The position numbers were made by a program, and so were the translations under genes. Positions 1 to 64,000 of a DNA stretch of 64,000 bases are shown here, piece by piece. Location of the stretch: sequence record NC_042116.1; one strand, given 5' to 3'. Each line of letters begins with the position of its first letter. Within the stretch, counting starts at the first letter, position 1. Below the pieces are notes generated by a model, which saw nothing but the letters and a program-made list of their open reading frames with translations, was not told the DNA's origin and did not search any database.

Positions 1-100
1 CTATAGATGGATAGACTTCTGGCAGTAAAGATGTTCAGATGGATAGACGTATAGACCTCCATACATCTAGATGGATATGTGTCTGGACGTTTAGACGGCT
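1..100. repeat. Short direct repeats at the probable genome end
   Basis: AGATGGATA at 5, 37 and 69 (exact 32-bp period); TAGAC/TGGAC at 12, 44, 52, 84, 92. Confidence 0.7.
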
Positions 101-282
101 AAACCGATTTTAGTCTCGATTTTCCATTAGTTCCCCTTCCGCGTCTAGAAAGTTCTAGGCAGAATCGAAAGTCGTCTTTTCGTGTTGACAGAGCTATATT
201 ATCAAATGGGGTTAATGATTGCAAGGACTTTTTTCAATAAAAATAAATTTGACATCTGATTATATAATGTAGTACTATAGTA

Positions 283-332
283 TCAATCCAGCGAAATGGA
301 CTAACCCTATAGGGTGCCGAGATCCGCCTATT
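283..332 (+). ncRNA. Two-hairpin element E1 (candidate small RNA)
   Basis: tcca-GCGAAA-tgga ctaa accc-tata-gggt; behind TTGACA(249)-18-TACTAT(273). Confidence 0.55.
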
Positions 333-364
333 AATATATAAAAGCGAATGAGAATCATTACTAA

Positions 365-413
365 TTATAGTTATATTCCCGCACCCTCTAGGGTATCCGA
401 TTTCTCTCGTCTG
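365..413 (-). ncRNA. Two-hairpin element E2
   Basis: Minus strand cga-GAGAAA-tcg, accc-taga-gggt; promoter TTGTAT(447-442)-17-TATTAT(424-419). Confidence 0.5.
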
Positions 414-658
414 AAATAATAATATCAAAGTACCGAATAGAATACAAGGATTATTTTTGATTTTTATGAAAATAGTTCAAATCGATTTATACGTATAAAG
501 GAAAGGATTTAAAAGGCGTACAAAAAAGCGGGGTGAATGTATAGCAGTACTATAGAAACGCCGTGTAATGGTTCCTATGCATTGTGGTGGTATGAATACG
601 CATATAAAGGAAAGAAACTTATATAAGGAAAGTATTTGCAATGAATGAAAGAAAGTAC

Positions 659-686
659 TTGCAAAGGTTTAAGGTTATGATACTAT
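659..686 (+). promoter_or_regulatory. sigma70 promoter with extended -10
   Basis: TTGCAA-16-TGn-TACTAT, A-rich upstream, AGTACT overlapping the -35. Confidence 0.7.
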
Positions 687-706
687 CTATTTCGCCAACA
701 AGGAAA

Positions 707-718
707 CGCTCTTTAACA
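707..718 (+). promoter_or_regulatory. boxA antitermination element
   Basis: CGCTCTTTAACA matches the rrn/lambdoid boxA consensus; about 15 nt after the predicted start site. Confidence 0.65.
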
Positions 719-788
719 ACTTACCGGATGATTACTTGATAGTGATTCTTTACTTTAGAAATAAAGAAAAAGAAAAACGATAAAGTAC

Positions 789-816
789 TTGACGGCAAGA
801 AAGGAAAGTGTAGAAT
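789..816 (+). promoter_or_regulatory. sigma70 promoter
   Basis: TTGACG-16-TAGAAT, AGTACT overlapping the -35. Confidence 0.7.
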
Positions 817-820
817 GTTG

Positions 821-969
821 GTTATCGAAAGGCGGTCAGGTTCGCCGTATGATAGGTAAGGGTAACAGGGCAGAATACAGTACTGTTACAGAGTAGCCAG
901 AAGTGCTACTACAGCCTTATAAAAAGCTAACTAACAGTTAGTGACCTATTTACCGCCTAACGATATAAC
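821..969 (+). ncRNA. Candidate ~150-nt multibranch structured RNA
   Basis: Nested helices 821-827/961-969, 830-836/952-958, 852-857/944-949, 858-861/915-918, 862-868/883-889, 893-897/905-909, 927-932/936-941; starts at the predicted start site; no ORF. Confidence 0.55.
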
Positions 970-1001
970 GAAAAAAGTTTCTAAGAAGTTGAAAAAAGTA
1001 C

Positions 1002-1031
1002 TTGACTGATAGAAGCAAAACATAGTACGAT
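1002..1031 (+). promoter_or_regulatory. sigma70 promoter for the first gene
   Basis: TTGACT-18-TACGAT, AGTACT overlapping the -35. Confidence 0.6.
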
Positions 1032-1082
1032 GTATCCAAGCCAAACGGCTAATATAACCTAAACTTTTAAGAGGAATTACAA

Positions 1083-1736
1083 ATGACTACTACTAACACT
1101 GCAAAAGTATCTCGTGTAACTTTGAACTCAATCATTTTCGCCACTGCTCCAGTACTGGCAGCACCAGCCGAAGGTGAGACTCACAGTAAAGAAGTAATTG
1201 CACAACACAAATCGTCAATTGCTGAATTTGTATCAAATCAGGGTAAAGAGTTGGCTGGTTTTATTTTGGGTAAAGTTGAAACGCCTGATTTGATTATCGC
1301 GATTATCAAAGAAGCGGCGAAACAAATTCCAGCAGTACAAAAGCAACTGGCAGATGAAGCGGCAGTAATTGCACTTCAAGCAGAAGAACAGCGTGTTAAA
1401 GATGCTGAAGCGGCTGAATTGAAGCGGAAACAGGATGAAGCAGCATTGCAAGCTGAAAAAGACAAAATGCTTAAATTGTTAACTGACGGCGGTTTAGATT
1501 TGGCAATCGCTCAAACAATGGTAGCGGCTGGCCTTAAAGCAAAAGCTCCAGCTAATTCACCAAAAAACAGTTATGAGCGTGTCGCGGTAACCGTTGACGG
1601 TAAAGGCTACGATGTTCCAGTGCGGGGCAACATGAGCGAAGAATTGAAAGCTCTGGTAGCTAAAGATGGCGGGGATCGTGATGCATTTATCGCAAAATAC
1701 CGCAACGAACCAGCCGCACAAGAAGTTACTGAATAA
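1083..1736 (+). CDS. H-NS-like protein (divergent)
   Basis: RBS GAGGA; coiled coil then LLTDGGLD..AAGLKAK..PKNSY..G.....LK..V...G..RDAFIAK, paralleling the H-NS linker and C-terminal domain by eye. Confidence 0.55.
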   Translation: MTTTNTAKVSRVTLNSIIFATAPVLAAPAEGETHSKEVIAQHKSSIAEFVSNQGKELAGFILGKVETPDLIIAIIKEAAKQIPAVQKQLADEAAVIALQAEEQRVKDAEAAELKRKQDEAALQAEKDKMLKLLTDGGLDLAIAQTMVAAGLKAKAPANSPKNSYERVAVTVDGKGYDVPVRGNMSEELKALVAKDGGDRDAFIAKYRNEPAAQEVTE

Positions 1737-1884
1737 TATCTCAGTACTGTAATAATAGGGGGCAAACCAGCCCCCTAAGCCGTTCTAATAGTATTTTAAT
1801 ACTAACGTGTTATAGTACTATTAGAAACGCTTAAAAGTCTTTATAGAGCGTTTTATCTTATATCTTAAGTAAGGATAAACGCTT

Positions 1885-2154
1885 ATGCAATTAACCCCAA
1901 TATCTAATTTAATTGATAAAAATACTCGCATCGCTAAAACGATGACAGCCATTAGCAGAACAACATCGGTTTTTAATGGTTATCTTGCTTTTGTTGTTAA
2001 TGGTGAATTAGTACAACGTAGGATCTATGACATGGCATATAATAGTTTATATGATTCGTGTATGTATATAGTTCACAAGAAAGTTAATTATGCCGTTAAT
2101 CTTCCCTGTAAGCCTATTAGCGGAGCGTTTAACGCTGAATCACTAAAGGCATAA
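1885..2154 (+). CDS. Hypothetical early protein
   Basis: RBS AAGGA, followed by a terminator. Confidence 0.6.
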   Translation: MQLTPISNLIDKNTRIAKTMTAISRTTSVFNGYLAFVVNGELVQRRIYDMAYNSLYDSCMYIVHKKVNYAVNLPCKPISGAFNAESLKA

Positions 2155-2164
2155 GGTAACATAA

Positions 2165-2200
2165 AAAGCCCGTTAGAATAGCTCTGACGGGCTTTTTTTA
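2165..2200 (+). terminator. Rho-independent terminator
   Basis: gcccgttag/ctgacgggc stem followed by a T-tract. Confidence 0.8.
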
Positions 2201-2209
2201 TTTGTTGAA

Positions 2210-2242
2210 AGTACTTGTATTATAATCTCAGTACTGTATAGT
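2210..2242 (+). promoter_or_regulatory. Repeated early promoter cassette
   Basis: TTGTATTATAATCTCAGTACTGTA at 2215, 3477 and 4603; near-identical inverted copy at 3404-3432. Confidence 0.75.
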
Positions 2243-2276
2243 AACCGTTATCGAAACAACTGACGGACACAACAAA

Positions 2277-2939
2277 ATGAATGCATTTAAGTTAGAGCAG
2301 TATAGAATGACTTTGGAAGTACTGGAACAAATGAAAGATTGTTTAGACCGTGGCGAGACTTATACCACTGTTAAAGGCAAGCCGTTCAACGTTACAAGGC
2401 AATTCGGTATTTGCTGGCACGTGTACGCTCATACGCCTAACCAGAACGTGACAGGGATCGGCACTGACTTTATGTGTCCTGCTTTTGCTGATATGGGCTT
2501 AGATATAGCGTATCCGGTGGAGTGTCAAACAACTGGCAGCCGCGATCAAATGCGTCAGGCATTCAGTGTACAGCGTAACATGTATGACGACAACACGATC
2601 CACGGTGCAAACCGGATCAAGCTGGTGGATTCACTGATCCAGTACTACCGCGAAAAGATGGAAACGCCGATCACTGTTACCATGTATGAACATTATTACA
2701 ATCAAGCCTTGACAGAAATGAAAAGGCGTGATTCAGCTAATGAAGCCGTATGGGATGTTTTGGATTTTGAGAACAATCAGATCTGGCGTGAACTGGCGTT
2801 AAAGATTGTTGACGAAGATCCTACACTGTCAGAAGTGGATCACGCTGCTGGTATTAACTACCCTGATGATCTAACGTTGGAAAATGTAGTTACTACTAAC
2901 TTACAGGAACGAATCCGCGAAGCATTAGAAAAGTTATAA
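2277..2939 (+). CDS. Hypothetical early protein
   Basis: 220-aa ORF with its own promoter and RBS. Confidence 0.8.
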   Translation: MNAFKLEQYRMTLEVLEQMKDCLDRGETYTTVKGKPFNVTRQFGICWHVYAHTPNQNVTGIGTDFMCPAFADMGLDIAYPVECQTTGSRDQMRQAFSVQRNMYDDNTIHGANRIKLVDSLIQYYREKMETPITVTMYEHYYNQALTEMKRRDSANEAVWDVLDFENNQIWRELALKIVDEDPTLSEVDHAAGINYPDDLTLENVVTTNLQERIREALEKL

Positions 2940-2950
2940 TCTTTACAAAT

Positions 2951-2986
2951 AAGGGGTTGACGGTTCAATCCCTTTTATAGTACTAT
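2951..2986 (+). promoter_or_regulatory. Fused terminator-promoter cassette (also ~3246, 4481, 9137, 9751, 11188, 11595, 12111)
   Basis: GGGTTGAC-loop-GTTAACCC-TTTT type hairpin carries the -35; the -10 follows the T-tract. Confidence 0.8.
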
Positions 2987-3017
2987 GTAATCACACCAAA
3001 CGAAAGGGGTTACATAA

Positions 3018-3233
3018 ATGAGATTAAGTGAGATTAGAAAAGTACTGAAGGAACTTAACAAGCTGGCGAAAGAATCGGGGAACCTCGATCCAGATATTAA
3101 GTTTTGGAGTGATGATATGGACACTGATTTACTATTAGAACTTTGTCCTGCTGATGATCTCAGTGATTCAGTACTGAAAAGCGGTAATATTCAAATAAGA
3201 TTGAATGAAGTACTTAACCCAAAAGTTAGATAA
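3018..3233 (+). CDS. Hypothetical early protein
   Basis: Own promoter and RBS. Confidence 0.7.
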   Translation: MRLSEIRKVLKELNKLAKESGNLDPDIKFWSDDMDTDLLLELCPADDLSDSVLKSGNIQIRLNEVLNPKVR

Positions 3234-3285
3234 TCTTTACAATTGCGGGGGTTGACAGCCTCCGCTTTTTTATGGTACTATAATA

Positions 3286-3336
3286 TCAATCCAGAGAAAT
3301 GGACTAACCCTAGAGGGTGCCGAGATCCATCTATAG
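3286..3336 (+). ncRNA. Two-hairpin element E3
   Basis: tcca-GAGAAA-tgga, accc-taga-gggt; promoter TTGACA(3252)-18-TACTAT. Confidence 0.55.
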
Positions 3337-3349
3337 AAAATTTAGTCCT

Positions 3350-3398
3350 TAATAGATATAGTTCCGCACCCTCTAGGGTATCCAATTTCTCTTGTATA
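3350..3398 (-). ncRNA. Two-hairpin element E4
   Basis: caa-GAGAAA-ttg, accc-taga-gggt; promoter TTGTAA(3432-3427)-17-TACAAT(3409-3404). Confidence 0.5.
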
Positions 3399-3532
3399 TA
3401 AGTATTGTACAGTACTGAGATTATAATTACAAGGGGTAAACAGAAATAAAAATTAAAATTAAAACGAAAAAAGAACTTGTATTATAATCTCAGTACTGTA
3501 CAATTCTCTATATCGAAAACGGGAGAAATGAT

Positions 3533-3988
3533 ATGAATTCAAAACAGTTCCAAGATGCAACAAGAGAAACATTTTTAAAGTACTTTCCTCATGGTCACAT
3601 AAGCATTTCTATGTTGGCAATAGGTGGTGGTTGTAATATCTTTTGTGGCTTGATTGGAGACATTAATGATGTAGGTGGTAAGATCCGCATGAATGATCCT
3701 GTAACGGTACGGGCTTATATTCATGATAACTTTTCATTTAATGATGAAAGTACTGAATTGGAAAACGTTGTTATTGAGTTCGATGGTTCGTGGATCTCAG
3801 TACTGCCAGACAATCCGCATCATTATTGTCAATCCCACAAGGTGCCAAGTCGCAAGATTAACGCAGAACCTAAAAAGGCATTAAGTAATTTGGATAAGTA
3901 CTTTAAACGATTAAAGGACTGTGTAACAGAGCAAGCAGGATTAAATCGCATTATTCAGCAGGATAAGATCCCAGCGAAATATCTATAA
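3533..3988 (+). CDS. Hypothetical early protein
   Basis: Promoter and RBS GGGAG. Confidence 0.8.
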   Translation: MNSKQFQDATRETFLKYFPHGHISISMLAIGGGCNIFCGLIGDINDVGGKIRMNDPVTVRAYIHDNFSFNDESTELENVVIEFDGSWISVLPDNPHHYCQSHKVPSRKINAEPKKALSNLDKYFKRLKDCVTEQAGLNRIIQQDKIPAKYL

Positions 3989-4063
3989 TATATTGTCAAA
4001 AGTACTTGCATTGTATAAGCGAGTACTTTACAATAAGTTATCGTTAATTGAGAGGATTCGAAT

Positions 4064-4474
4064 ATGTTACATGTTAAAGGTTTTTCTGAGGGTGGTTATT
4101 GCTTTATGATTGGTGATAAGCCTGTTTCTGTTGTTGAAGCATTGCAGAAAAATGGTAAGAAATTTAACAAGAATACATTAAACGCTTTAAATAGAAATAA
4201 TCTTGCTAATGAAAGCGATCTTGTGTCATTTGAGTTACAAGTACAATCATTACATAAAGGATTAACACCTGAATATGTAATTCAAATTTTACGCAATGAA
4301 TATAATATTGATTTTAATAATGATTTTCATGAGTTAAGTTCTGCCAGCGTACTGGATTTATTAACAGTATATCATATTGCACAATATCGAGCACCCTCAC
4401 CATGTAATCGTGATGGTTCGCCAATGCGTTATTTTTACCAGTACTTACAACGCTTCATAGAAAAGAAAAAATAA
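4064..4474 (+). CDS. Hypothetical early protein
   Basis: Promoter and RBS GAGG. Confidence 0.75.
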   Translation: MLHVKGFSEGGYCFMIGDKPVSVVEALQKNGKKFNKNTLNALNRNNLANESDLVSFELQVQSLHKGLTPEYVIQILRNEYNIDFNNDFHELSSASVLDLLTVYHIAQYRAPSPCNRDGSPMRYFYQYLQRFIEKKK

Positions 4475-4520
4475 TCAAATAAGGGGTTGACTTCGGTTAA
4501 CCCTTTTTGCTATACTAATA

Positions 4521-4570
4521 TTACTCCAGAGAAATGGACTAACCTTATAAGGTGTATAAGTGTACCTATA
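4521..4570 (+). ncRNA. Two-hairpin element E5
   Basis: tcca-GAGAAA-tgga, acct-tata-aggt (compensatory change); promoter TTGACT(4487)-18-TATACT. Confidence 0.55.
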
Positions 4571-4662
4571 ATAAAATAATTAAAATTCATACAAAAAAGT
4601 ACTTGTATTATAATCTCAGTACTGTATAATTCTTTATATCGAAAACAAACGAGGGTTTTTAA

Positions 4663-5085
4663 ATGAGAACATGTAAAGAGTGTGGGAACAATTGCAACGT
4701 ATTATCTAATGGTGTTGTCCATCATTACAACGAGGATGATAAAATTGATTATGATCTAGATGGGGATCATGTTGCAATACCTGAATTATCTGATTCTGAA
4801 AACAACATGTTAAATCCAATTCTTCAAAGTACTTTTAATTTTAATGGTGATGTTCCTTGTATTAACTACGCCGCGAATGGTGGAGGTTATGAAACTTACC
4901 AGTACTTCATTTGTGCTGATGGTGGATGTTTAGGAATTGGAACAGTAATTAATGAGTTTCATAAAGTAAACTTTAATGATCCTGATGATAAACAATGGCA
5001 CATTGTAGGGGTTGACGTGAATTATGAAAATACTAATCTGATAGATGATCACACAGGGGATTATATACCAGTAGCATATAGTTAA
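4663..5085 (+). CDS. Hypothetical early protein with N-terminal CxxC
   Basis: Promoter and RBS. Confidence 0.75.
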   Translation: MRTCKECGNNCNVLSNGVVHHYNEDDKIDYDLDGDHVAIPELSDSENNMLNPILQSTFNFNGDVPCINYAANGGGYETYQYFICADGGCLGIGTVINEFHKVNFNDPDDKQWHIVGVDVNYENTNLIDDHTGDYIPVAYS

Positions 5086-5123
5086 CACTACAACGGGGAT
5101 CATTGATCCCCTTTTGAGGTTAT

Positions 5124-5384
5124 ATGAATTTGTTTTATAGTACTAGAAAATTAGTAGTTTCATTTGATTGTAATTCTGATAAAATACATTGTGTAATATA
5201 CAGAAAAGGAATTCCCCGTTCTGATAACTGGAAAGTACTACAATCCTATACAATCAAACGTAAAGGGTTTAAACAGTTAGATGACCGTACACAAAAGGCA
5301 TGTTTACGGCAAGTACTTAAAGCCATGCGTAACCGTATAACGCAAGCCTTACATGTTGCATTAACTACAAAAGATATTTTATAA
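5124..5384 (+). CDS. Hypothetical early protein
   Basis: RBS GAGG. Confidence 0.65.
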   Translation: MNLFYSTRKLVVSFDCNSDKIHCVIYRKGIPRSDNWKVLQSYTIKRKGFKQLDDRTQKACLRQVLKAMRNRITQALHVALTTKDIL

Positions 5385-5433
5385 TATAATGAAAAAGTAC
5401 TGGACAATGCTCCGGTACTTTGTTATAGTACTT

Positions 5434-5483
5434 ACATCGAAGAGAAATTCGAATAGCCCATAGGGTTCAGGGGTATATCTATT
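5434..5483 (+). ncRNA. Two-hairpin element E6
   Basis: tcgaa-GAGAAA-ttcga, gccc-ata-gggt (G-U pair); promoter TGGACA(5401)-17-TATAGT. Confidence 0.5.
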
Positions 5484-5570
5484 AAAAATAATTAAAATTA
5501 AAATGAAAAAGAACTTGCATTATATTATGGTTATGGTAATATATGTATATCGAAACGGGAGGTTAAAGAA

Positions 5571-5639
5571 ATGAAACTACGTTATCAATGGCTGTTGTTT
5601 GCTTTGTTTATCCTTATTACCTGCGTAAACTTTGATTAG
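5571..5639 (+). CDS. 22-aa hydrophobic peptide MKLRYQWLLFALFILITCVNFD
   Basis: First ORF after a promoter, RBS GGGAGG; below the ORF-track cutoff. Confidence 0.55.
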   Translation: MKLRYQWLLFALFILITCVNFD

Positions 5640-5649
5640 GGGTTATATT

Positions 5650-5991
5650 ATGATGATTGTTAATTTTGGTGATGATATCAATTTCAATAGTATTAAGCAT
5701 ATTATTGAAAATAGTCAATCTGTATCTATTACTTTATGTTCTGGCGATGGTGATGATTTTACGGTGATAGAGCGTGAAAGAAGTAAATTTGCTGGTTTTC
5801 ATGAGGCTGATCTTATTGTTATTAGTACTGTACGGAATGCTAATGGTGATGGTATCTATGTATATCCTGAATACTTCACTATTGAACAGGCAGACACTGC
5901 TATTGAAGCCTTAAAAATAAGGGCGAGTGATACTAACATTAAATCATCTGAATTATCGGATTCATTAACTGATTTATTAGAATCGGAATAA
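5650..5991 (+). CDS. Hypothetical early protein
   Basis: ORF track, start trimmed to the RBS. Confidence 0.7.
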   Translation: MMIVNFGDDINFNSIKHIIENSQSVSITLCSGDGDDFTVIERERSKFAGFHEADLIVISTVRNANGDGIYVYPEYFTIEQADTAIEALKIRASDTNIKSSELSDSLTDLLESE

Positions 5992-6056
5992 CATATTAAA
6001 AGTACTTGCATTATATTAGCGAGTACTTTATAATAAGTTATCAAGTGAGGTACACA

Positions 6057-6104
6057 ATGAAATGGTTAATTATAGCAGTACTGATTTACATTATCTTTTT
6101 TTAA
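6057..6104 (+). CDS. 15-aa hydrophobic peptide MKWLIIAVLIYIIFF
   Basis: First ORF after a promoter, RBS GAGG. Confidence 0.45.
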   Translation: MKWLIIAVLIYIIFF

Positions 6105-6123
6105 TCAAGAGGAAGTATTAAAA

Positions 6124-6333
6124 ATGGCACATAAAGATCGTCGTTACAATGTTAACCCTGAATTTACCGGACACGAATCAGGCAAGAAACAATTTGTTAT
6201 TCGTTTTTGTGGTGATTTTGTTTCTTCGCATTCAAAGCGTGATGAAGCAGAAAAAGAGATCGCCCGATGGAAAAGTACTGGAACCGTTCCACATATCGGA
6301 AAGCAATGGGATAATCTAGTTGAACCTGTTTAA
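6124..6333 (+). CDS. Hypothetical early protein
   Basis: RBS GAGG, terminator downstream. Confidence 0.7.
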   Translation: MAHKDRRYNVNPEFTGHESGKKQFVIRFCGDFVSSHSKRDEAEKEIARWKSTGTVPHIGKQWDNLVEPV

Positions 6334-6395
6334 TTAATCAATATTAATAGTACTGGATATTTCACCAGTACTGTTTTTTTATACAGCATAATATA

Positions 6396-6446
6396 TAATA
6401 GATACATTTTCGCACCCTGTGGGTCAAAGACATTTCGCTGTCTATG
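6396..6446 (-). ncRNA. Two-hairpin element E7
   Basis: gaca-GCGAAA-tgtc, accc-aca-gggt; promoter TTGACA(6480-6475)-17-TATTAT(6457-6452). Confidence 0.55.
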
Positions 6447-6568
6447 AAGTAATAATACAGTATTTTGATATACGTGTCAAGGATTAAATTAAAATTAAAA
6501 CAAAAGAAAGTACTTGCATTAAGTATGAAGTACTGTATAATCTTTTATATCGAAACGGGAGAATTAAA

Positions 6569-6835
6569 ATGAGTAACGCATTGAAAGCCATGATTTCGTT
6601 GGTAATTTCAGTACTGATAACCTTTATAATATTAACTGCGGCGAGAGATGATGTTCTGTGGCGGTTAACCATGTTAGGATATGAAATTGAAGATACATGG
6701 TATTCTTTTTTGACATATGGCCTTAATGGGATATATGCTATATTAATGGTAGGTTGTTTTTATATTTTGTTTTGTTTAATGTTTTATATTACAGGGGGCA
6801 GTAATGAGAGTACAACCAATCCAGCCAATCATTAA
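6569..6835 (+). CDS. Small membrane protein (2 TM)
   Basis: Two hydrophobic segments; promoter and RBS. Confidence 0.7.
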   Translation: MSNALKAMISLVISVLITFIILTAARDDVLWRLTMLGYEIEDTWYSFLTYGLNGIYAILMVGCFYILFCLMFYITGGSNESTTNPANH

Positions 6836-6974
6836 GTTAGCGAATAGTACGGTCAAGAATGAATATTCAAAAATTGTTGTTGACATTCCGTGTAGTACTG
6901 TGGTATCATTAGGTTCTTACAAATCGTGTGATTTGTATAATTCAATTTATAAACAATAAAAGGTAAATTTAAAT

Positions 6975-7832
6975 ATGGGTAAGTTCATTAGTTATGGTAT
7001 TCTTGCGATTATTGTATTCGTTGGCTTGGGTGCATTGTTTGGTTCGTGGTACACGGTTGATCAGCAAGATCGTGGGGTAGTACTAACGAATGGTAAAATT
7101 ACCAGTATTGCAGAACCTGGTTTGAACTGGAAAATGCCATTTATGGATTCTGTTGTACAAATTCCAGTCACTGGACAAAATAAAAGTTATTCGAATCTAA
7201 AAGCATATAGCCGAGATCAACAACCGGCAGATATGACTATTTCTGTATCATTCTCAGTCCCAGCGGCTAAGGTAGGGGAATTATATAGTACTTTTGGTGA
7301 TATTGACAATCTAACTACTCGTGTTATTGATCGTCAAGTACCACAAGCTGTTGAAAATGTTTTTGGTCAGTTTAATGCGATTTCAGCAGTACAAGATCGT
7401 AATAAGTTAGTTACTAACTTAAACATTGCAATTAAAAAGGCAATGGAAAACTACCCAGTAGTAATTGAGAGTGTACAGGTTGAAAACCTATCATTCAGTC
7501 CAGCATATGAAAAATCAATTGAAGAACGTATGCAAGCAGAGATCGCAGTTACAAAGCGTGAACAGGACTATGCACAGGCTAAAATTTCAGCATCTATCAC
7601 AGTTGCGAATGCACAAGCTGACGCTGATAGCCAGTTAGCAAAGGCAACGGCAGCAGCTAAAGCAACACGCCTACAGGGTGAAGCTGATGCAGCAGCAATT
7701 AAGGCGAAGTCCGAAGCACTAAACAATAATCCACAACTTGTACAGTTGGCGGCGGTGGATAAATGGGATGGTGTACTACCTACTCAAATGGTTCCATCTG
7801 CTACAGTGCCGTTTGTGAATCTAAACAAATAA
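6975..7832 (+). CDS. SPFH/band-7 (prohibitin-like) membrane protein
   Basis: N-terminal TM, YTVDQQDRGVV..GK, EPGLNWKMPF, coiled-coil tail, KWDGVLP. Confidence 0.9.
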   Translation: MGKFISYGILAIIVFVGLGALFGSWYTVDQQDRGVVLTNGKITSIAEPGLNWKMPFMDSVVQIPVTGQNKSYSNLKAYSRDQQPADMTISVSFSVPAAKVGELYSTFGDIDNLTTRVIDRQVPQAVENVFGQFNAISAVQDRNKLVTNLNIAIKKAMENYPVVIESVQVENLSFSPAYEKSIEERMQAEIAVTKREQDYAQAKISASITVANAQADADSQLAKATAAAKATRLQGEADAAAIKAKSEALNNNPQLVQLAAVDKWDGVLPTQMVPSATVPFVNLNK

Positions 7833-7842
7833 GTACTATCAC

Positions 7843-7871
7843 AAAAAGCCTCGCATTGTCGAGGCTTTTTA
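7843..7871 (+). terminator. Rho-independent terminator
   Basis: gcctcg/cgaggc stem flanked by A- and T-tracts. Confidence 0.75.
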
Positions 7872-7964
7872 TTATCTGAATAATTAAAATTAAAACGTAA
7901 AAAGTACTTGCATTGCATGAGCGAGTACTTTATAATACTTACATCAACCACAAGAGGCAACAAC

Positions 7965-8321
7965 ATGAAAACTGAATTTTTCGCGACAAGAACACTGGCA
8001 CGTAACGCGGTAGAAGCTCTTAATGGTAAGTTTAAAGATTTTGGTAAAGATGCTCCTACTGGTGAACGTTGGGGGGTGCTGGTGGATGAAGTACTACCAG
8101 TACAAAAGGAACAACCTGTACTTGCAGAAGAAAAAAGTAATCTTGACGTACACCTTGATTTTCTTAGTACTGTAGCAGAAGATGCAGCAAAAGCATTGAA
8201 TCAGCCAACTGGCATTCGTGGGGAACAAACGTTAACAACACCAAATAAGAAGCCTGTACGGGTTATGTGGCGTCGTTCAATTGTGGCGGTACGTTTGTCG
8301 GCACTACTGGCAAAATCGTAA
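7965..8321 (+). CDS. Hypothetical early protein
   Basis: RBS GAGG at the trimmed start. Confidence 0.75.
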   Translation: MKTEFFATRTLARNAVEALNGKFKDFGKDAPTGERWGVLVDEVLPVQKEQPVLAEEKSNLDVHLDFLSTVAEDAAKALNQPTGIRGEQTLTTPNKKPVRVMWRRSIVAVRLSALLAKS

Positions 8322-8370
8322 CACAAACCAGTGGGGGCGGTATAATGCCCCCTTTATTAATCGAGATCAT

Positions 8371-8613
8371 ATGAAAAAAGTTAAAGTTGATAATACACAA
8401 TTACGCATACATTTCAAGGCACAAACAAAAGTACTTGATAAGGCTATTCGTATTGTGAAAGATTATAATAATGGAAGTGTTAGAGCTAGACGGTTAGGGT
8501 GTGGTTTATTTTCAGTAATAGATGTATCACATAACGAACGGATCGTTATTAAAAATAAAACACTTAATTTAATGACTCATGAACAATATAATAAATTCGT
8601 CGAACGACGTTGA
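8371..8613 (+). CDS. ParE/RelE-like small protein
   Basis: Basic 80 aa; pattern RR......S.DV....RIV.....LMTHEQYN recalls the plasmid/ICE ParE-like family. Confidence 0.4.
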   Translation: MKKVKVDNTQLRIHFKAQTKVLDKAIRIVKDYNNGSVRARRLGCGLFSVIDVSHNERIVIKNKTLNLMTHEQYNKFVERR

Positions 8614-8669
8614 CATAATCCCCTAAATATGTATAATAATAATTATACACGATTAGGGGATTTTTTATT

Positions 8670-9131
8670 ATGCCTGATAAATTTAAACATAAGAATGGTG
8701 CTACTATAGCAGGTCATGCCGATAAGTGGAGTGATGAAAATCGTTCAAGTACTAGCCATGATGCAGGTCAAGGCAGTAAAGGAAGTAGAAATCAAGGTAC
8801 AGGAATTAAAGGTAAACAAAACGCAATGCCATCACAAGGTATTGATACATCCAAAATGGATAAGTCCGAAAAATTAAAGTACTTTAATTCATTGGGTTTA
8901 CTTCAACCAAAACAAGAATTATCTATTAAAACATGGCCTGAAACATTACGCAAAGTGTTTAAAGATGAACCTGTATACATTAAAGATATTACTACAGCGA
9001 TAAAATCTATTGAACCAGCAAGATATCAACAAGCCATTCAATCAGCATTCAATGCTTATAACGAAATTACAAAACAATCAGATGATGTTTATGATATATA
9101 TGCCGCAATTATGCAAGCATTACAAGGTTAA
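8670..9131 (+). CDS. Hypothetical protein
   Basis: TTGACA-17-TATAAT promoter upstream. Confidence 0.65.
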   Translation: MPDKFKHKNGATIAGHADKWSDENRSSTSHDAGQGSKGSRNQGTGIKGKQNAMPSQGIDTSKMDKSEKLKYFNSLGLLQPKQELSIKTWPETLRKVFKDEPVYIKDITTAIKSIEPARYQQAIQSAFNAYNEITKQSDDVYDIYAAIMQALQG

Positions 9132-9197
9132 AAATAAGGGTTGACTTAGGTTAACCCTTTTGCTATTGTATCAGTACACAAACATAAGGAATATATT

Positions 9198-9548
9198 ATG
9201 AAAAAGTTATTATTACTCGCTGCATTGTTTAGTACTACAGTTTCAGCTCAAACATTTACATGTGATAACTTTACTCTGTATCAAGGTATCGGGAATAATC
9301 AATACAGACAAGTAGATGATGCAGGTGTACAATCATCTTTGATTATTACTATTGAAAGTACTGAACCATTGATTACCGTTTCTGTACAAGGTGATAAAGA
9401 AGTAGTGCAATTCTGGAAAGATTATAATGTATACAGAAATGTAACTGGTGAAATTTCACAAGATGGTAATAATTTTATAATGAAAACAGCTATACAAGAT
9501 AGTACTGGATTTTATATACCTGTTAAAATTGAGTACCATTGTAAATGA
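9198..9548 (+). CDS. Exported protein with signal peptide
   Basis: MKKLLLLAALFSTTVSA signal sequence. Confidence 0.75.
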   Translation: MKKLLLLAALFSTTVSAQTFTCDNFTLYQGIGNNQYRQVDDAGVQSSLIITIESTEPLITVSVQGDKEVVQFWKDYNVYRNVTGEISQDGNNFIMKTAIQDSTGFYIPVKIEYHCK

Positions 9549-9742
9549 AATTATCATTTCAATTTATGCAAAAACGTGTACAGTACTTAAGTACTAAACT
9601 TAAAGCATCATTTGAATTACAATATACTATTAACCAGAATTATCATTTAATGAAGAATGGAAGATTCATTGTTATGGATCAACCGCTTGAAGTACTGGAA
9701 ATAGTAGTAAGTGCATTATTAAGTAATAACATTAAAAAATAA
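9545..9742 (+). CDS. Hypothetical protein
   Basis: 4-nt overlap with the upstream gene. Confidence 0.55.
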   Translation: MKLSFQFMQKRVQYLSTKLKASFELQYTINQNYHLMKNGRFIVMDQPLEVLEIVVSALLSNNIKK

Positions 9743-9787
9743 TTAAATCAAGGGTTGACAGATGTTAACCCTTTTTGCTATACTACT

Positions 9788-9838
9788 ATCAATCCAGCGA
9801 AATGGACTAACCCTATAGGGTGTATAGTTATGTCAGTA
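9788..9838 (+). ncRNA. Two-hairpin element E8
   Basis: tcca-GCGAAA-tgga, accc-tata-gggt; promoter TTGACA(9755)-18-TATACT. Confidence 0.55.
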
Positions 9839-9947
9839 CTTTTATTATATGCATAGAAAAAAGAATTTAAAATTAAAATGAAAAAGTACTTGTGTTAGAT
9901 GCTGGAACTGATAGAATGTAGTTATTGAAACAACGGGAGTAAATGAA

Positions 9948-10187
9948 ATGGCTAATAAAGAAGTGGAATTTAAAATTAGAAAATGGTCAGATACTAACGG
10001 TCGTCCATTTGATGTAGTGCTGGTGGATCATTTAAAGAACAATCAGCATTTTCAGCCTAATGTTGAATTTAGTACTATCGAACATGCTGAAAAGCATATG
10101 GAAACTTTGAATACTTTAATTCAAAATCATCCTGACCGTATCAACTTTATTCGTGACCATTGGCCTGTTGATGCTGGTATAGAATAA
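9948..10187 (+). CDS. Hypothetical early protein
   Basis: Promoter and RBS GGGAG. Confidence 0.7.
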   Translation: MANKEVEFKIRKWSDTNGRPFDVVLVDHLKNNQHFQPNVEFSTIEHAEKHMETLNTLIQNHPDRINFIRDHWPVDAGIE

Positions 10188-10270
10188 AAATTAAAACGTA
10201 AAAAGTACTTGACTATATCAGTTGAGTACTTTAAAATAGAATCTTAATTAACGCAATAGGAAACTAAATC

Positions 10271-11164
10271 ATGAAAATGTACAAAGGCATCGCAGGTAAA
10301 GCAATCAAAGAAAACCGTCCACTGCTAAGATCAGAACTGGAATTAGTTGTTCCATCTATCTTTTCAAGTACTGGTCACGAATCACGTTCAGCCCGTTTTG
10401 CACCTGTTGCAACCATCGACGTTGTAGACCGTTTAGCAAAAGAAGGTTATCAACCATTCTTTGCTATTCAGTCCAATGTACGTGACGAATCTAAACGCGA
10501 ATTCACTAAGCATATGCTGCGTTTCCGTCAACATGATGGCAAAACATCCGGCGAATCTAATGAGATCATTCTCGTTAACGCAAATGATGGAACAAGTGCA
10601 TACCAATTAATGGCTGGTCAATTCCGTTTCGTTTGTGCTAATGGTCTGGTTATGGGTAACATGCAACATAACACAAAAATCTATCACAAAGGTAACAATA
10701 TCATGGATGACGTGATCGAAGGCGTCTATTCAGTAGTGAAAGATTTTGATAACATTGAACGTTATAAAGATGAAATGCAACTAATACAACTCAATGATAT
10801 CGAACGTAAAACGTTTGCAACTGCTGGTTATCTCATGAAAGAGGGTATGCCGGAATCAGGTTCAATGGATGACTTTGTATATAATCCATTACAACTATTA
10901 TCACGTTCAGGTCTAAACAGTCAAGACCAGTACGATAATAGTTTGTATAGTACTTTTAATACTGTACAACAACACTTAATCAACGGTGGTCAACGCTCAT
11001 TCATGGAAGATCGTAATGGTCGTACTCGCCGCCGGTCAAGCCGTAGCGTTACTAATATCAATAAGAACATTGATATCAATAGTAACTTATGGCAACTCGC
11101 TACCGCTCTGGTAGAGAAGAATACTAAGGTAGTGCATGATATCGTTGATGCACAATTAGCATAA
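10271..11164 (+). CDS. DUF932-family protein (plasmid leading-region / cryptic-prophage type)
   Basis: PSIFS...HESRSARF....T..V...L..EGYQPFFAIQS..RD..KREFTKHMLRFR; IILVNANDGTSAYQLMAGQFRFVCANGLV. Confidence 0.85.
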   Translation: MKMYKGIAGKAIKENRPLLRSELELVVPSIFSSTGHESRSARFAPVATIDVVDRLAKEGYQPFFAIQSNVRDESKREFTKHMLRFRQHDGKTSGESNEIILVNANDGTSAYQLMAGQFRFVCANGLVMGNMQHNTKIYHKGNNIMDDVIEGVYSVVKDFDNIERYKDEMQLIQLNDIERKTFATAGYLMKEGMPESGSMDDFVYNPLQLLSRSGLNSQDQYDNSLYSTFNTVQQHLINGGQRSFMEDRNGRTRRRSSRSVTNINKNIDINSNLWQLATALVEKNTKVVHDIVDAQLA

Positions 11165-11252
11165 AAAATAAGTACTAAAATCATATAAGGGGTTGACTTA
11201 GGTTAACCCCTTTTGCTATACTTATTTTATCGAAACAAACGAGGGTTAGTAA

Positions 11253-11588
11253 ATGTTAGATGTATATGTAAGTTCTGATTTAGTTTCAAATGGTAGAAAT
11301 GAATTCGGTACTGAACAAGAAAAAACAGAGTACTACATCATTGCAGAATCTCTAAATGGTCAACGTATTAGATTAGATAGTGTGTCAGTTGTTAATAGAG
11401 AATACACTGATACACAATGTACTGAGTACTTAGAACGTGTAGTTACAAAGATTAAAAATCATTTAGCTGGTGGCGGTAAGTTGAATCAAGATTGTTGGTA
11501 CGAAATAGATCCTTGCTATGGTTCACAACGTTATATCGATTTGGATAGTACTGGTTACTTTTATCAACGTGAGAAACTCGAAGATTAA
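11253..11588 (+). CDS. Hypothetical early protein
   Basis: Promoter and RBS. Confidence 0.75.
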   Translation: MLDVYVSSDLVSNGRNEFGTEQEKTEYYIIAESLNGQRIRLDSVSVVNREYTDTQCTEYLERVVTKIKNHLAGGGKLNQDCWYEIDPCYGSQRYIDLDSTGYFYQREKLED

Positions 11589-11659
11589 TAATAATGGGGT
11601 TGACTATAGTTAGCCCCTTTTGTTATAATTCTTATACACCATCACGAAAGGAAAGAAAC

Positions 11660-11857
11660 ATGACCAGAGAAGAAAGAATTGAAGCCGCTCATAAAGTACT
11701 GTCATACAAACATCTTGAAATGATGGAAGCTATGGAAAGAGTACTAGGCACGTTTGGCGAAGAAAATAAAGATAAATTCGCCGCCGTATATGATGAAGTT
11801 GAAAACATTCTTTATCCGCATGGTGCGGGTGAAGATGCAGTATACTGCGAAAATTAA
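11660..11857 (+). CDS. Hypothetical early protein
   Basis: RBS AAGGA at the trimmed start. Confidence 0.65.
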   Translation: MTREERIEAAHKVLSYKHLEMMEAMERVLGTFGEENKDKFAAVYDEVENILYPHGAGEDAVYCEN

Positions 11858-11918
11858 TAATTGACAAACTCTGTCAGTACTGATATACTGGCAGAATATT
11901 AAATCAGAGGATACAATC

Positions 11919-12101
11919 ATGGTTCAAGTAGATATGACTGAATTGCGGAAACGTTGGTATGATCTGGCACGTTCAGGTACTGCTATCACTGGTGATAATA
12001 GAACGCTTTTCAATACACTTGATGGCTGGCAACGTCAAGAATTAAAAAATGCATATCTTAAAGGTATGACAGATGAAGTGCAAGCATGGGATGAAGCATA
12101 A
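11919..12101 (+). CDS. Hypothetical early protein
   Basis: Promoter and RBS GAGGA. Confidence 0.65.
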   Translation: MVQVDMTELRKRWYDLARSGTAITGDNRTLFNTLDGWQRQELKNAYLKGMTDEVQAWDEA

Positions 12102-12147
12102 TTAAAAATAAAGGCTTGACTTAGGTTAAGCCTTTTGCTATAGTACT

Positions 12148-12198
12148 ATCAATGCAGCGAAATGCACTAACCCTATAGGGTGCGGAGCTATGTCTGTA
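12148..12198 (+). ncRNA. Two-hairpin element E9
   Basis: tgca-GCGAAA-tgca (compensatory change), accc-tata-gggt; promoter TTGACT(12116)-17-TATAGT. Confidence 0.55.
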
Positions 12199-48711: not shown

Positions 48712-48752
48712 AATTAAAATCTCCTTAAAGGATTATACTTTATAACTATTTA

Positions 48753-60924: not shown

Positions 60925-60928
60925 CATA

Positions 60929-61144
60929 ATGACAATATTTGTAATTCTTGGAATGTTATTGCTGTTTTTATTTGGTTTGGCAGCGACTGTTGGAAGTATA
61001 GTTTTGATATTCTTCTCATCAATGTTTGGTGGTAAAGTTAGTACTGGTGAATTATTATTTGGTATATTTTGGATCTGCGTTGGTTCATATTGTTTGTACT
61101 ATGTATTTTCAAATATAAATTTTAGTATTAATATAACGGGATGA
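60929..61144 (+). CDS. Membrane protein
   Basis: Hydrophobic. Confidence 0.6.
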   Translation: MTIFVILGMLLLFLFGLAATVGSIVLIFFSSMFGGKVSTGELLFGIFWICVGSYCLYYVFSNINFSINITG

Positions 61145-61360
61145 TAAAATGGGCGAATTGATTTTTGCATTAGTAGAATGCTTAATTGAAATATTGTGTA
61201 TGGGTGCCTCAGTTCGTTGGTTTTTTGGATTACTATTATTATCTATAGCTATTTGTGTTGGTTATTATACCTATATTATGTAAGGATTAAAAATGAAACT
61301 ATTTACAAAAGGACGTATGTCATTTCGATTATGAATTTTAAATCATAATAAGGAGGACAT

Positions 61361-61903
61361 ATGTTCTTTAATCAGAAATTTAAAATCTTCTATGATAACG
61401 GAAATGTAGTTGAAGTAGATGATTTGTTAGAATACATTGGTAATGCATATGGTGCTGCTGAAACATTCTACTTACGTATGAAGTTTACTATAAAAGTTGA
61501 TAAATCAAGTTTTTGGAGTTCTTTATGCTTTAACGAAAATTGGCATGTAAAAGATTTGTTCTTATACACTGAAAACAATATCATGATTTCTCCTGAGTTG
61601 TTTAAAGGTGAATATTTAAAACATCGTACCGATTATATGAATATATGGTACAGAAATCGTAAGTATTCCATGATGCAATGGAGGCATTTTCATTTCAAAC
61701 GTGGTCATACATCAACGTATGAACGTAAAATGGAAACGATAGCTGAACGTAGGGCAATTGCTGGTGTAGTAAAAGAAGAAGGTGAACCAGAGTTTCGTGG
61801 TCGCCGCCGTTGTATCCCACATCCGTGGGATGACATAATGGCTCGTCGCAGTCTTTCTTGGAAAGATTGTACTAAAAGAAAACGTCAACATAAAGGAAGC
61901 TAA
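61361..61903 (+). CDS. Hypothetical protein with a basic C-terminus
   Basis: RBS AGGAGG; PWDD...SWK...KRKRQ tail. Confidence 0.75.
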   Translation: MFFNQKFKIFYDNGNVVEVDDLLEYIGNAYGAAETFYLRMKFTIKVDKSSFWSSLCFNENWHVKDLFLYTENNIMISPELFKGEYLKHRTDYMNIWYRNRKYSMMQWRHFHFKRGHTSTYERKMETIAERRAIAGVVKEEGEPEFRGRRRCIPHPWDDIMARRSLSWKDCTKRKRQHKGS

Positions 61904-61931
61904 TGCTTCCTTTTTTCATAGAAGATATATA

Positions 61932-62756
61932 ATGAATTCAGATGAACTACTACTAGCTCGTAAACTTTTAAACAATTTAACTATTGAAAATAGAAATTTT
62001 ATTGTAACTCGTGACCTATCACGCGATATCCCTTCTTATGAAGATTGTAGATATCCATCACATTTAATTAGTTGGCTACATTTAAATAATTTATTAGTAC
62101 TGTTAAGTAGCTACCCAATTGATGATGATGAACGTTATTTTATTGAAATTTTTAAAATTACTGATTTGGGTAGTACTATTACATGGTTTACTGAATTACT
62201 TGAACAATACAATAAAGGAATGGATGGGGAACACGAATTTAGATATACAGGAAAATTATTGTATACTATATTACATAACTTCAATGAACTAGAAGTAGAC
62301 CCTGTTATTCAATTAATAACTGATGAAGAAAAAGAAGCATATCAACATTTTTACCGTACCCAAGTTTGGGATTCGACCGTTAAAGAAACAAAGACTTATA
62401 CACGTGAAGAAGCATTACAAACAATTGAATTTAATAAAGGTTTACTTTCTATGTTTGAAATGTCAGTACTTTTAGGTGCACGTGGTACAGATCCTACCCG
62501 TACAAATAATTATGTTTTCAAAAAATGTATGGAAGAATTGGGTGAAATGGCAGTAGAAGATCAAATTGAAAATGGTCTTTCATATAAAGATGCTGGCAGT
62601 GATGGTGTTGCTGGTGAAGCTGTAGATCTTGCAATTTGTGCAATGGATATGTTTGCCTTGCAGTATGGACATTTAAATCCAGAAGAAATTCAAGAGAAGT
62701 TTATCATTTATATGAATAAAAAATTAAACAAATGGAAAAATACTTTAGGAAAATAA
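61932..62756 (+). CDS. Protein with a C-terminal MazG-like NTP pyrophosphohydrolase domain
   Basis: KCMEELGEMA...GEAVDLAICAMD. Confidence 0.7.
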   Translation: MNSDELLLARKLLNNLTIENRNFIVTRDLSRDIPSYEDCRYPSHLISWLHLNNLLVLLSSYPIDDDERYFIEIFKITDLGSTITWFTELLEQYNKGMDGEHEFRYTGKLLYTILHNFNELEVDPVIQLITDEEKEAYQHFYRTQVWDSTVKETKTYTREEALQTIEFNKGLLSMFEMSVLLGARGTDPTRTNNYVFKKCMEELGEMAVEDQIENGLSYKDAGSDGVAGEAVDLAICAMDMFALQYGHLNPEEIQEKFIIYMNKKLNKWKNTLGK

Positions 62757-62757
62757 T

Positions 62758-63033
62758 ATGACGGATCATACAACAACAAAAGCATTAACTGATGTTTTAG
62801 CAGAAATGAATTCCCAAGATGAAAAATGGGGGGCTGACAGAAATCAACATCCATTTTTATGGCACGTAATTCTAAGTGAAGAAGTAGGGGAAGTTGCTCA
62901 AGCGATTTTACATGATGAATTTGGTGGTGACCATGCTGGTACTGCACGAGAAGAACTTGTTCAAGTCGCTGCTGTGGCCTTGCAAATCATTGAACAGTAT
63001 GATAGACTACAAAAAGAAAATGAGGAAAAATAA
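62758..63033 (+). CDS. MazG-like NTP pyrophosphohydrolase
   Basis: ILSEEVGEVAQA...REELVQVAAVA. Confidence 0.8.
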   Translation: MTDHTTTKALTDVLAEMNSQDEKWGADRNQHPFLWHVILSEEVGEVAQAILHDEFGGDHAGTAREELVQVAAVALQIIEQYDRLQKENEEK

Positions 63034-63302
63034 TGATAATTCGTCCAGTACATAATCATATAATTGCAAAAAAACATATAAATGAACCTAAAAGTGCTGG
63101 CGGGATTTTATTAACTGCAAGTGGTGAAGATGAATCAACCCATGCTGAAGTGTTAGCAATTGGTTCTGCATTTAAAGGTAATGTAAAAGTTGGTGATATT
63201 ATCACATATAGTGATGATAAACGTGTTCATACTGAAAAAATTGAGAATGAATATCTATTAATTATGCCAGAAGATTGTGTACTGGCAGTTATTGAAAAAT
63301 AA
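63033..63302 (+). CDS. groES: GroES-like co-chaperonin
   Basis: IRPVHNHII; KSAGGILL; AEVLAIG; VKVGD.I; YLLIMPED.VLAV. Confidence 0.9.
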   Translation: MIIRPVHNHIIAKKHINEPKSAGGILLTASGEDESTHAEVLAIGSAFKGNVKVGDIITYSDDKRVHTEKIENEYLLIMPEDCVLAVIEK

Positions 63303-63311
63303 GGTTATACA

Positions 63312-64000
63312 ATGCATCCAGTACTAGTAGAATTACAAAATCGTGGTCTAATTAATCAAAGTACTGATATTTCAGTACTATCTTCTTTACTTGACAATGG
63401 CTCATCAGTGTATTGTGGATTCGACCCAACTGCTGATTCATTGCATATTGGCAGTCTATTACCACTAATGACTATGAAAGTACTAAAAGAATATGGTGTT
63501 AATGTTATTGCACTAGTTGGTGGAGCAACAGGTCGTATTGGCGATCCAAGTTTTAAAGCTCAAGAAAGAAAATTGCTTGATGAAGCTATGGTAGAACATA
63601 ATATTGCAGGTATTACAACACTAATTCGAAGTTTTCTTGGTTCTGATACAGTTATTGTTAATAATTTTGATTGGACTAAAGATCTTTCAGTACTTGACTT
63701 TTTACGTATCTATGGTAAATGTTTTTCTGTTAATACTATGATTTCAAAAGAATCAGTTCGTTCTCGTATCGAACGACCAGATCAAGGTATTTCTTTTACC
63801 GAATTTACTTATCCAATTTTACAAGGTATGGATTTTGAACATCTATATAATGGTGGATGTGCCATTCAGATTGGTGGGTCAGATCAGTGGGGTAATATGA
63901 TTGCCGGAACAGATCTTATTCACAAAATGCATGGAAATGACAAGCAATGTGGTGTTATAACACTTCCATTATTACTAAAATCTGATGGTACTAAATTTGG
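63312..64000 (+). CDS. tyrS: Tyrosyl-tRNA synthetase (5' part; runs off the window)
   Basis: Hand translation: YCGFDPTADSLHIGS, GGATGRIGDPS, QIGGSDQWGN, KSDGTKFG. Confidence 0.95.
   Translation, partial: MHPVLVELQNRGLINQSTDISVLSSLLDNGSSVYCGFDPTADSLHIGSLLPLMTMKVLKEYGVNVIALVGGATGRIGDPSFKAQERKLLDEAMVEHNIAGITTLIRSFLGSDTVIVNNFDWTKDLSVLDFLRIYGKCFSVNTMISKESVRSRIERPDQGISFTEFTYPILQGMDFEHLYNGGCAIQIGGSDQWGNMIAGTDLIHKMHGNDKQCGVITLPLLLKSDGTKF

Follow-up and report, generated by a model that had tools for sequence, protein, structure and literature searches.

The genome of the Yersinia jumbo phage fHe-Yen9-04 (genus Eneladusvirus, 354,378 bp) contains one six-base palindrome, AGTACT, in extreme excess, and this over-representation is both real and specific to that word. 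The palindrome was analysed in the first 64,000 bases of the genome (record NC_042116.1), referred to below as the window; counts for the whole genome were made over 350 of its 354 kb, starting from base 1. The first 8 kb agree with that record at 100% identity from base 1, its annotated coding coordinates translate on the window free of internal stops, and AGTACT numbers over record bases 1–50,000 are the same as in the window. The window contains 254 copies of AGTACT, approximately 4 per kb. Dinucleotide shuffles yield 16.7 ± 4.2 copies with a maximum of 28, and none of 100 shuffles reaches 254. A first-order Markov model predicts 16.5 copies, which corresponds to a 15.4-fold excess and places AGTACT first among all 4,096 hexamers. 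An earlier, sequence-only reading of this DNA had put the enrichment at roughly 10- to 20-fold, and each of the 30 positions that it counted by hand in bases 1–5,000 is exact. Its counts of 13 copies between 50.0 and 53.2 kb and of four in the minus-strand genes at 47,806–49,790 are also correct. Over 350 kb, 972 copies are found where 84 are expected. The density is 2–3 per kb throughout the genome and reaches 5.5–6.4 per kb within positions 1–20,000, an early region of small ORFan genes whose products, with few exceptions, match nothing in Pfam.

The signal in the window is nested: GTAC is enriched 2.8-fold, AGTAC and GTACT approximately 6-fold and AGTACT 15-fold. A general enrichment of GTAC or of all xGTACx hexamers, which the sequence-only reading had raised as an outcome that would count against it, is ruled out as the sister palindromes are either absent (CGTACG and GGTACC, 0 copies each) or neutral (TGTACA, 34 vs 31 expected). 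Variants of AGTACT with one mismatch had also been described as common. This is correct for the outer positions (AGTACG 3.2-fold, CGTACT 2.7-fold, GGTACT 2.3-fold and AGTACA 2.0-fold) and incorrect for the inner ones, where the ratios are approximately 0.5–1.6. The effective word is HAGTACTD: at position −1, G makes up 5.6% and C 29%, and position +1 is the mirror image, with C depleted. Beyond ±1 the flanks carry no further information, and there is no composite motif or partner element within ±45 bp. In addition, 22 of the 64 six-base palindromes are missing from the 350 kb, and these include CCATGG (0 vs 42 expected), TGGCCA (0 vs 39), GCATGC (0 vs 35), CAGCTG and CTGCAG (0 vs 27 each), GGATCC (0 vs 26), and GGTACC and TGCGCA (0 vs 25 each). 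Restriction sites are thus avoided to an unusually complete degree, and AGTACT is the lone extreme exception in a palindrome-avoiding genome.

The excess does not follow from what the genes encode. Although 82% of the copies in the window are inside coding sequences, the density is 7.0 per kb in non-coding DNA and 3.6 per kb in coding DNA. The 209 copies that fall fully within coding sequences occupy all three frames, as had been claimed, with 96, 36 and 77 copies in frames 0, 1 and 2. The unfavoured synonymous codons that the sequence-only reading had pointed out are likewise in frame (AAG-TAC-TTT at 3578, CAG-TAC-TTA at 4439 and GTA-CTG at 2319), and AGTACT sites as a whole recruit the disfavoured codons TAC, AAG, CAG and CTN. 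The codon-preserving shuffle proposed in that reading was run in three forms. When protein and codon usage are preserved, 46.3 ± 6.1 copies result from shuffling within genes and 36.1 ± 5.2 from pooling across genes; when dinucleotides are held as well, the number is 73.2 ± 7.1. The observed number in coding sequences is 210, so the excess persists. The window has a single pair of paralogous genes; an array of paralogues suspected at g027–g037 received no backing from BLASTP.

The word is also visible in the proteins. The dipeptide Ser-Thr occurs 140 times vs 78 expected, while the reverse order, Thr-Ser, occurs 80 times vs 78. Here, 96 of the Ser-Thr dipeptides are spelled AGTACT, where codon usage predicts 23. 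Val-Leu (149 vs 103 expected) and Gln-Tyr (58 vs 32) are inflated as well. Further, the half-sites are balanced between the strands (AGTAC 342 vs GTACT 315; CAGTAC 95 vs GTACTG 94) even though the same strand encodes almost every gene, and this indicates that selection acts at the level of double-stranded DNA and not on RNA or codons. The minus-strand genes g094c and g095c (47,806–49,790), with their four sites, show that the word is maintained whichever strand codes.

Evidence for selection comes from codon alignments of 87 genes between fHe-Yen9-04 and Serratia phage BF, which share 78% nucleotide identity. AGTACT sites are common to both phages in 110 of 165 cases (67%), compared with 32% for other hexamers. 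At third codon positions where the amino acid is the same, identity is 0.888 within sites and 0.711 outside them, and along the alignment identity jumps over exactly the six bases of the word. In a comparison with eleven relatives, the share of conserved positions drops from 67% to approximately 22% with divergence and is always 2–2.5 times background. The number of sites per aligned region stays equal between relatives (63/61, 58/60, 52/49, 27/28 and 29/27). The DNA ligase gene illustrates this turnover: in 12 phages it has 4–7 sites each, only one position is common to nearly all of them, and several positions were gained in parallel via conservative amino-acid changes. These constant counts in the face of turnover suggest that selection maintains the density of AGTACT and not its exact positions. 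Consistent with a slow build-up of sites after acquisition, homing-endonuclease genes and a strain-specific insertion have half the genome density, which is still approximately 5 times chance. Between fHe-Yen9-03 and fHe-Yen9-04 there are 3 substitutions in 948 motif bases vs 376 in 48,562 bases elsewhere, a difference in the expected direction but underpowered (p = 0.065). Spacing between sites is somewhat more even than Poisson (coefficient of variation 0.88 vs 1.00 ± 0.035). A search for helical or other periodicity returned two signals only, a period of 3 that reflects codon phase and the promoter pairs at 20–21 bp described below. Four tandem pairs of AGTACT 7–8 bp apart (AGTACTnnAGTACT) were also observed within genes, at 9582–9595, 12378–12391, 14434–14447 and 44755–44767.

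The AGTACT excess is a trait of one clade of phages and is present in each relative sampled. fHe-Yen9-04 was placed in the RaK2/GAP32/121Q group, which belongs to the T4-related “group 2.2” jumbo phages. In phage BF, 50 kb contain 246 copies vs 15 expected. An excess of 6- to 17-fold, together with a complete lack of GCGC, is found in BF, fHe-Yen9-03, Kaldavass, Hallingskeid and 17 IMG/VR loci, the last being the surroundings of ligase homologues with identities down to 63%, among them GAP32 and CBB. Kaldavass and Hallingskeid each have approximately 100 copies per 40 kb. In contrast, the distant jumbo relatives PA5oct (1 vs 11 expected) and Atu_ph07 (2 vs 5) are not enriched, and neither is phiR1-RT (7 vs 7), which is T4-like and infects the same Yersinia host. 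A 50-kb sample of Escherichia coli K-12 has 0.06 copies per kb, giving a phage-to-host density ratio of approximately 46. No prior report of AGTACT or GTAC enrichment in these phages was found in the literature searched. The sequence-only reading had proposed that AGTACT is a mark selected across the genome, in the manner of HIP1 or of uptake sequences. This proposal is well supported by the codon-preserving nulls, the strand symmetry, the footprint at synonymous sites, the constant density with turnover, the inflated Ser-Thr and Val-Leu dipeptides and the absence from outgroups and the host sample. The spread through the clade, the AGTACT pairs in early promoters and the accompanying loss of GCGC and 22 other palindromes lay beyond the view of that reading.

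The word is also built into predicted early promoters. Intergenic pairs of AGTACT separated by 20–21 bp coincide with sigma70-like promoters, 40–80 bp upstream of early open reading frames and their ATG. These take the form AAA-AGTAC|TTGCAT-N-AGTACT-N-TATAAT, in which the upstream box is fused to the −35 hexamer and the second box ends one base before the −10. The hexamers are of the sigma70 type (TTGCAT, TTGACT or TTGTAT, followed after 16–17 bp by TATAAT, TACAAT or TAAAAT). Seven double-box promoters are in the window between 2.2 and 10.2 kb, in addition to single-box forms, and 11 are in BF. Those in the window are all on the plus strand, at 2210–2242 (AGTACTTGTAT-N-AGTACTGTATAGT, upstream of g003), 4001–4034 (g006), 4598–4630 (g007), 6001–6034 (g010), 6509–6541 (g011), 7903–7936 (g013) and 10204–10237 (g019). 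Three further sigma70-like promoters on the plus strand are in the 1-kb non-coding leader (654–1030) and have the upstream box only, fused to the −35 (AGTACTTGCAA at 654, AGTACTTGACG at 784 and AGTACTTGACT at 997). An exact-pattern search of 2.9 million IMG/VR contigs returned 45 stretches with 94 distinct instances of the double-box form, mostly on contigs of approximately 350 kb. Over these 94 instances the distance from box to box is 20 bp in 54 and 21 bp in 39, and it follows the 16- or 17-bp spacer. As box spacing tracks the spacer between −35 and −10, the two boxes hold fixed positions relative to the −35 and the −10, respectively. RpoD-like early promoters have been described for phage CBB, in a paper whose main text does not mention the AGTACT feature (PMC5259590).

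Three observations were made beside these promoters. First, a near-consensus sigma70 promoter (TTGACA-17-TATAAT, 8596–8643) precedes g015, a virion protein gene, and is the sole strong promoter of the early region that has no AGTACT box. Second, the early-region gene g014 (8371–8613, 80 amino acids) matches a ParE-like toxin domain (PF24732, E = 9e-12). Third, the −35 of many double-box promoters (4001, 6001, 6509 and 7903) is TTGCAT, which contains TGCAT. In the relative Kaldavass, TGCAT is reported to carry a modification of unidentified type (PMC11780129) and is depleted (28 vs 50 per 40 kb).

The closest analogues of AGTACT are HIP1 and the DNA uptake sequences, and it is a member of neither. 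Like HIP1 (GCGATCGC), it is a short palindrome that recurs approximately once per 0.3–1 kb in every reading frame, both within and outside coding DNA, and is typical of its lineage, with a genome-wide excess of at least approximately 10-fold that is shared within the lineage and conserved above background. Unlike HIP1, which belongs to cyanobacterial chromosomes and overlaps known methylation motifs, AGTACT is a 6-bp word of other sequence in a lytic phage clade; its modification was not found in two members of that clade, and it is also built into promoters. It is an analogue of HIP1 and not an instance of it. The uptake sequences of Neisseria (DNA uptake sequences, DUS) and Pasteurellaceae (uptake signal sequences, USS) are similar in that a density of approximately 1 per kb is kept while positions turn over and peptide composition is affected, much as with Ser-Thr and Val-Leu here. 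These, however, are asymmetric 9–12-mers, often arranged as inverted pairs at terminators, which competence proteins recognise and which biased uptake propagates. AGTACT is a six-base word of two-fold symmetry that carries no information past ±1, and lytic phages are not known to have an uptake step.

Other known words are less similar. Chi is also a short word that is much denser in self DNA, and such a word could tell a nuclease or motor to spare or to act; however, Chi lacks symmetry, depends on orientation and is recognised by RecBCD in single-stranded form, whereas AGTACT is palindromic and its symmetric half-site counts show no orientation bias. Separately, the E. coli Chi octamer itself (GCTGGTGG) was counted 13 times on the plus strand and five times on the minus strand in 350 kb, with approximately 1.9 expected. 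In the window it is at 2621, 8078, 10019, 11466, 12240, 12744, 28538 and 31977 on the plus strand, six of these within the first 13 kb, and at 26026 on the minus strand. Codon choice (GCT-GGT-GG) may account for this excess, or the octamer may have a role connected with RecBCD. The stoperators of cluster A mycobacteriophages resemble AGTACT as a single regulator-binding word scattered over a phage genome beyond promoter operators. These number approximately 20–35 and are asymmetric 13–14-mers, mostly intergenic and oriented with transcription, whereas AGTACT is symmetric, present in approximately 1,000 copies and mostly intragenic (82% in coding sequences). The ScaI target (AGT^ACT) is identical in sequence, although phages normally avoid restriction targets. 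Finally, WACTRTGAC of the tf-like Pseudomonas phages is, similarly, conserved within its clade and over-represented in phage genomes, but its approximately 9–13 copies are strand-specific and associated with nicks, while the approximately 1,000 copies of AGTACT are symmetric and nicks are unreported (PMC11780129).

The reading that we favour, tentatively and at somewhat less than even odds, is that AGTACT is a density-selected recognition word read by a phage-encoded DNA-binding factor, possibly one associated with RNA polymerase. It corresponds to the DNA-binding or self-recognition option of the sequence-only reading. The clade keeps the word, as HAGTACTD, at approximately 3 per kb genome-wide by positive selection, which would serve recognition at the DNA level. 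The reader would be a clade-specific protein with two-fold symmetry that binds non-covalently, either free or riding on RNA polymerase. A density approximately 46 times that of the host sample would concentrate such a protein on phage DNA and so provide a sequence-encoded mark of “self”. The phage itself shows no sign of wholesale base replacement. With the word fused to the −35 and placed one base before the −10, its reader would, in addition, govern early transcription or its timing. The phage also encodes a sigma70-family factor with regions 2 and 3, g498 (genome positions 332070–333062). Its homologues are found in approximately 75–99 phage records at 29–87% identity, a range that roughly coincides with the AGTACT-rich clade. 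This restriction would be a point in favour of the proposed recognition word, and many other genes would be equally restricted.

Several points weigh against a reader of this kind. Among approximately 48 early, virion, replication-module and regulatory proteins, Pfam scans gave almost no domains and no reader, and the early-region proteins and small virion and replication-module proteins are ORFans. The gene g079 (38471–39700, 409 amino acids) adjoins the ligase gene in 12 of 12 clade members examined and has no Pfam hit; its AlphaFold model (pLDDT 73) has no significant fold match in the PDB. PDB sequence searches with g240c and g050 were also empty. A regulator present in few copies would be spread thin over approximately 1,000 sites, and the polymerase holoenzyme may itself recognise the promoter boxes, in which case the sites in coding regions would lack an explanation. 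Sites are at most 2.7 kb apart, as Poisson spacing predicts, so no maximum spacing is enforced. Lastly, the nanopore data that speak for non-covalent reading, described below, are indirect, being from other clade members and from virion DNA only, with motifs identified by manual inspection.

An extension of the proposed recognition word involves the tetramer GCGC, of which there are no copies in 350 kb vs 144 expected and none in any clade locus. GCGC is normal in PA5oct, Atu_ph07 and phiR1-RT and is present at 6.8 per kb in the 50-kb E. coli K-12 sample. The purge is much stronger than that of GGCC, CCGG or CGCG, and suggests a clade-specific pressure, such as a GCGC-directed nuclease of the phage or its hosts. 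In a two-word code that separates the phage's own DNA from that of the host, the AGTACT reader would permit the use of phage DNA or protect it, by recruiting polymerase, by anti-termination or by immunity to nucleases, while a GCGC-directed activity would attack the host. We regard this as a speculative and rather unlikely arrangement.

Among the alternatives to a bound reader, AGTACT may be the working site of an enzyme that acts transiently on phage DNA and is needed at regular intervals on both strands. This could be a primase start site, a topoisomerase site or the site of a nickase or endonuclease for recombination-dependent replication or late transcription. The sites are even, genome-wide and independent of gene class, their density is conserved rather than their position, and a palindrome presents the same site on both strands. 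In addition, T4-type replication and recombination genes are present, including those for a gp61-like primase, gp46/47 and topoisomerase II. However, known primases read trinucleotides and do not need an enriched word, and an enzyme site leaves the boxes locked to −35 and −10 in 94 promoter instances unexplained. Further, the study that detected nicks in another phage reported none for two jumbo phages of the clade (PMC11780129). An enzyme site is thus unlikely.

It is also improbable that AGTACT is the target of a covalent modification, whether a methyl or a bulkier group, with more sites affording more protection or a stronger epigenetic mark of self. The phage has six annotated methyltransferases, and protection would pay in a genome that tolerates approximately 1,000 ScaI sites while 22 palindromes have been purged. 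HIP1 of cyanobacteria is associated with methyltransferases. Moreover, the DNA of RaK2 has been reported to be methylated (PMC3622015). Nevertheless, comparison of native and amplified DNA of Kaldavass and Hallingskeid by nanopore sequencing found modified GATC, CCWGG and TGCAT, the last in Kaldavass only; for these two phages neither an AGTACT motif nor nicks were reported (PMC11780129). As both phages are enriched in AGTACT, a covalent mark is unlikely, and the motifs found already match the number of methyltransferases in the two phages. Of the enzymes encoded by fHe-Yen9-04, g050 (25729–26268, plus strand), a phage Dam-family N6-adenine methyltransferase (PF05869), is the only one with homologues across the clade; it was weighed as the reader of AGTACT, and GATC is its more likely target. 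A second candidate, g080, is annotated as a type II methyltransferase and has no Pfam hit. Together with g081, it forms an insertion (39746–41031, plus strand) between g079 and the DNA ligase gene that is found only in fHe-Yen9-04. It is missing from the equally enriched fHe-Yen9-03 and BF and so is not responsible. The methyltransferases g147 and g241 were rejected as they are not common to the clade. Searches with endonuclease candidates gave no informative hits, and neither a methyltransferase nor a methyltransferase–endonuclease pair could be assigned to AGTACT. The modification system suggested in the sequence-only reading is, therefore, disfavoured, with no clade-wide methyltransferase left unaccounted for.

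The same reading had offered a site-directed mutational process as an origin, and we consider it quite improbable that AGTACT is a functionless word built up by biased mutation or repair or by transmission drive. Such processes exist: very-short-patch repair inflates CCWGG and uptake bias inflates USS. Experience with USS shows that drive can imitate selection, including the bending of the proteome and seeming conservation, and newly acquired genes in the phage hold fewer sites. However, of the 18 words that differ from AGTACT by one base, not one is scarce enough to have supplied approximately 890 extra sites, and an origin from one neighbouring word was rejected. The counterparts of non-shared sites vary at every position, often by 2–3 bases. 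Together, undepleted neighbours and differences at all positions count against a mutational or repair origin. The 11- to 15-fold excess is well above known repair-driven biases, and the fixed placement in promoters speaks for function. A cutting endonuclease would drive the loss of sites, making a drive mechanism implausible in a lytic phage. Decay of methylated GCGC or AGCGCT into GTAC or AGTACT was also rejected, as the expected precursor pools (144 GCGC and 13 AGCGCT) are far too small.

Very improbable is the proposal that the sites serve a host protein such as SlmA, with phage DNA activating nucleoid occlusion and blocking division. The SlmA consensus GTGAGTACTCAC has an AGTACT core, and the hosts of the clade are all Enterobacterales or close relatives. 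The flanks, however, disagree, and SlmA was rejected as the reader: G at −1 (5.6%) and C at +1 are three-fold depleted, opposite to the GTG...CAC flanks of the consensus, and sites within three flank mismatches of an SlmA site number 57 vs 115 expected. Also, the T4-like phage of the same Yersinia host is not enriched. Finally, that the word is an artefact of composition, codon usage or a repeated protein motif is almost certainly wrong: the phage does use the codons AGT, ACT and GTA often and Ser-Thr dipeptides are frequent, but the three protein-preserving nulls give 36–73 copies vs 210, non-coding density is twice that in coding DNA, all three frames are used, the strands are symmetric and the window has one paralogous pair.

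HIP1, the uptake sequences and Chi are examples of genome-wide signature words in cellular chromosomes, and what HIP1 does is, to our knowledge, still unsolved. AGTACT is an equally extreme signature word, but in a clade of lytic phages with a 350-kb genome that grow on laboratory E. coli. As this word measurably reshapes proteins and is wired into early promoters, it opens the search for the reader of an iterated palindrome to experiment. If the two-word code were true, it would be a sequence-encoded equivalent of the hydroxymethylcytosine system of T4, replacing base modification. If a reader marks phage DNA as self, the word would show how relatives of T4 that lack hydroxymethylcytosine redirect the host machinery and spare their own DNA, and being AGTACT-rich and GCGC-free would also be a simple signature for spotting the clade in metagenomes.

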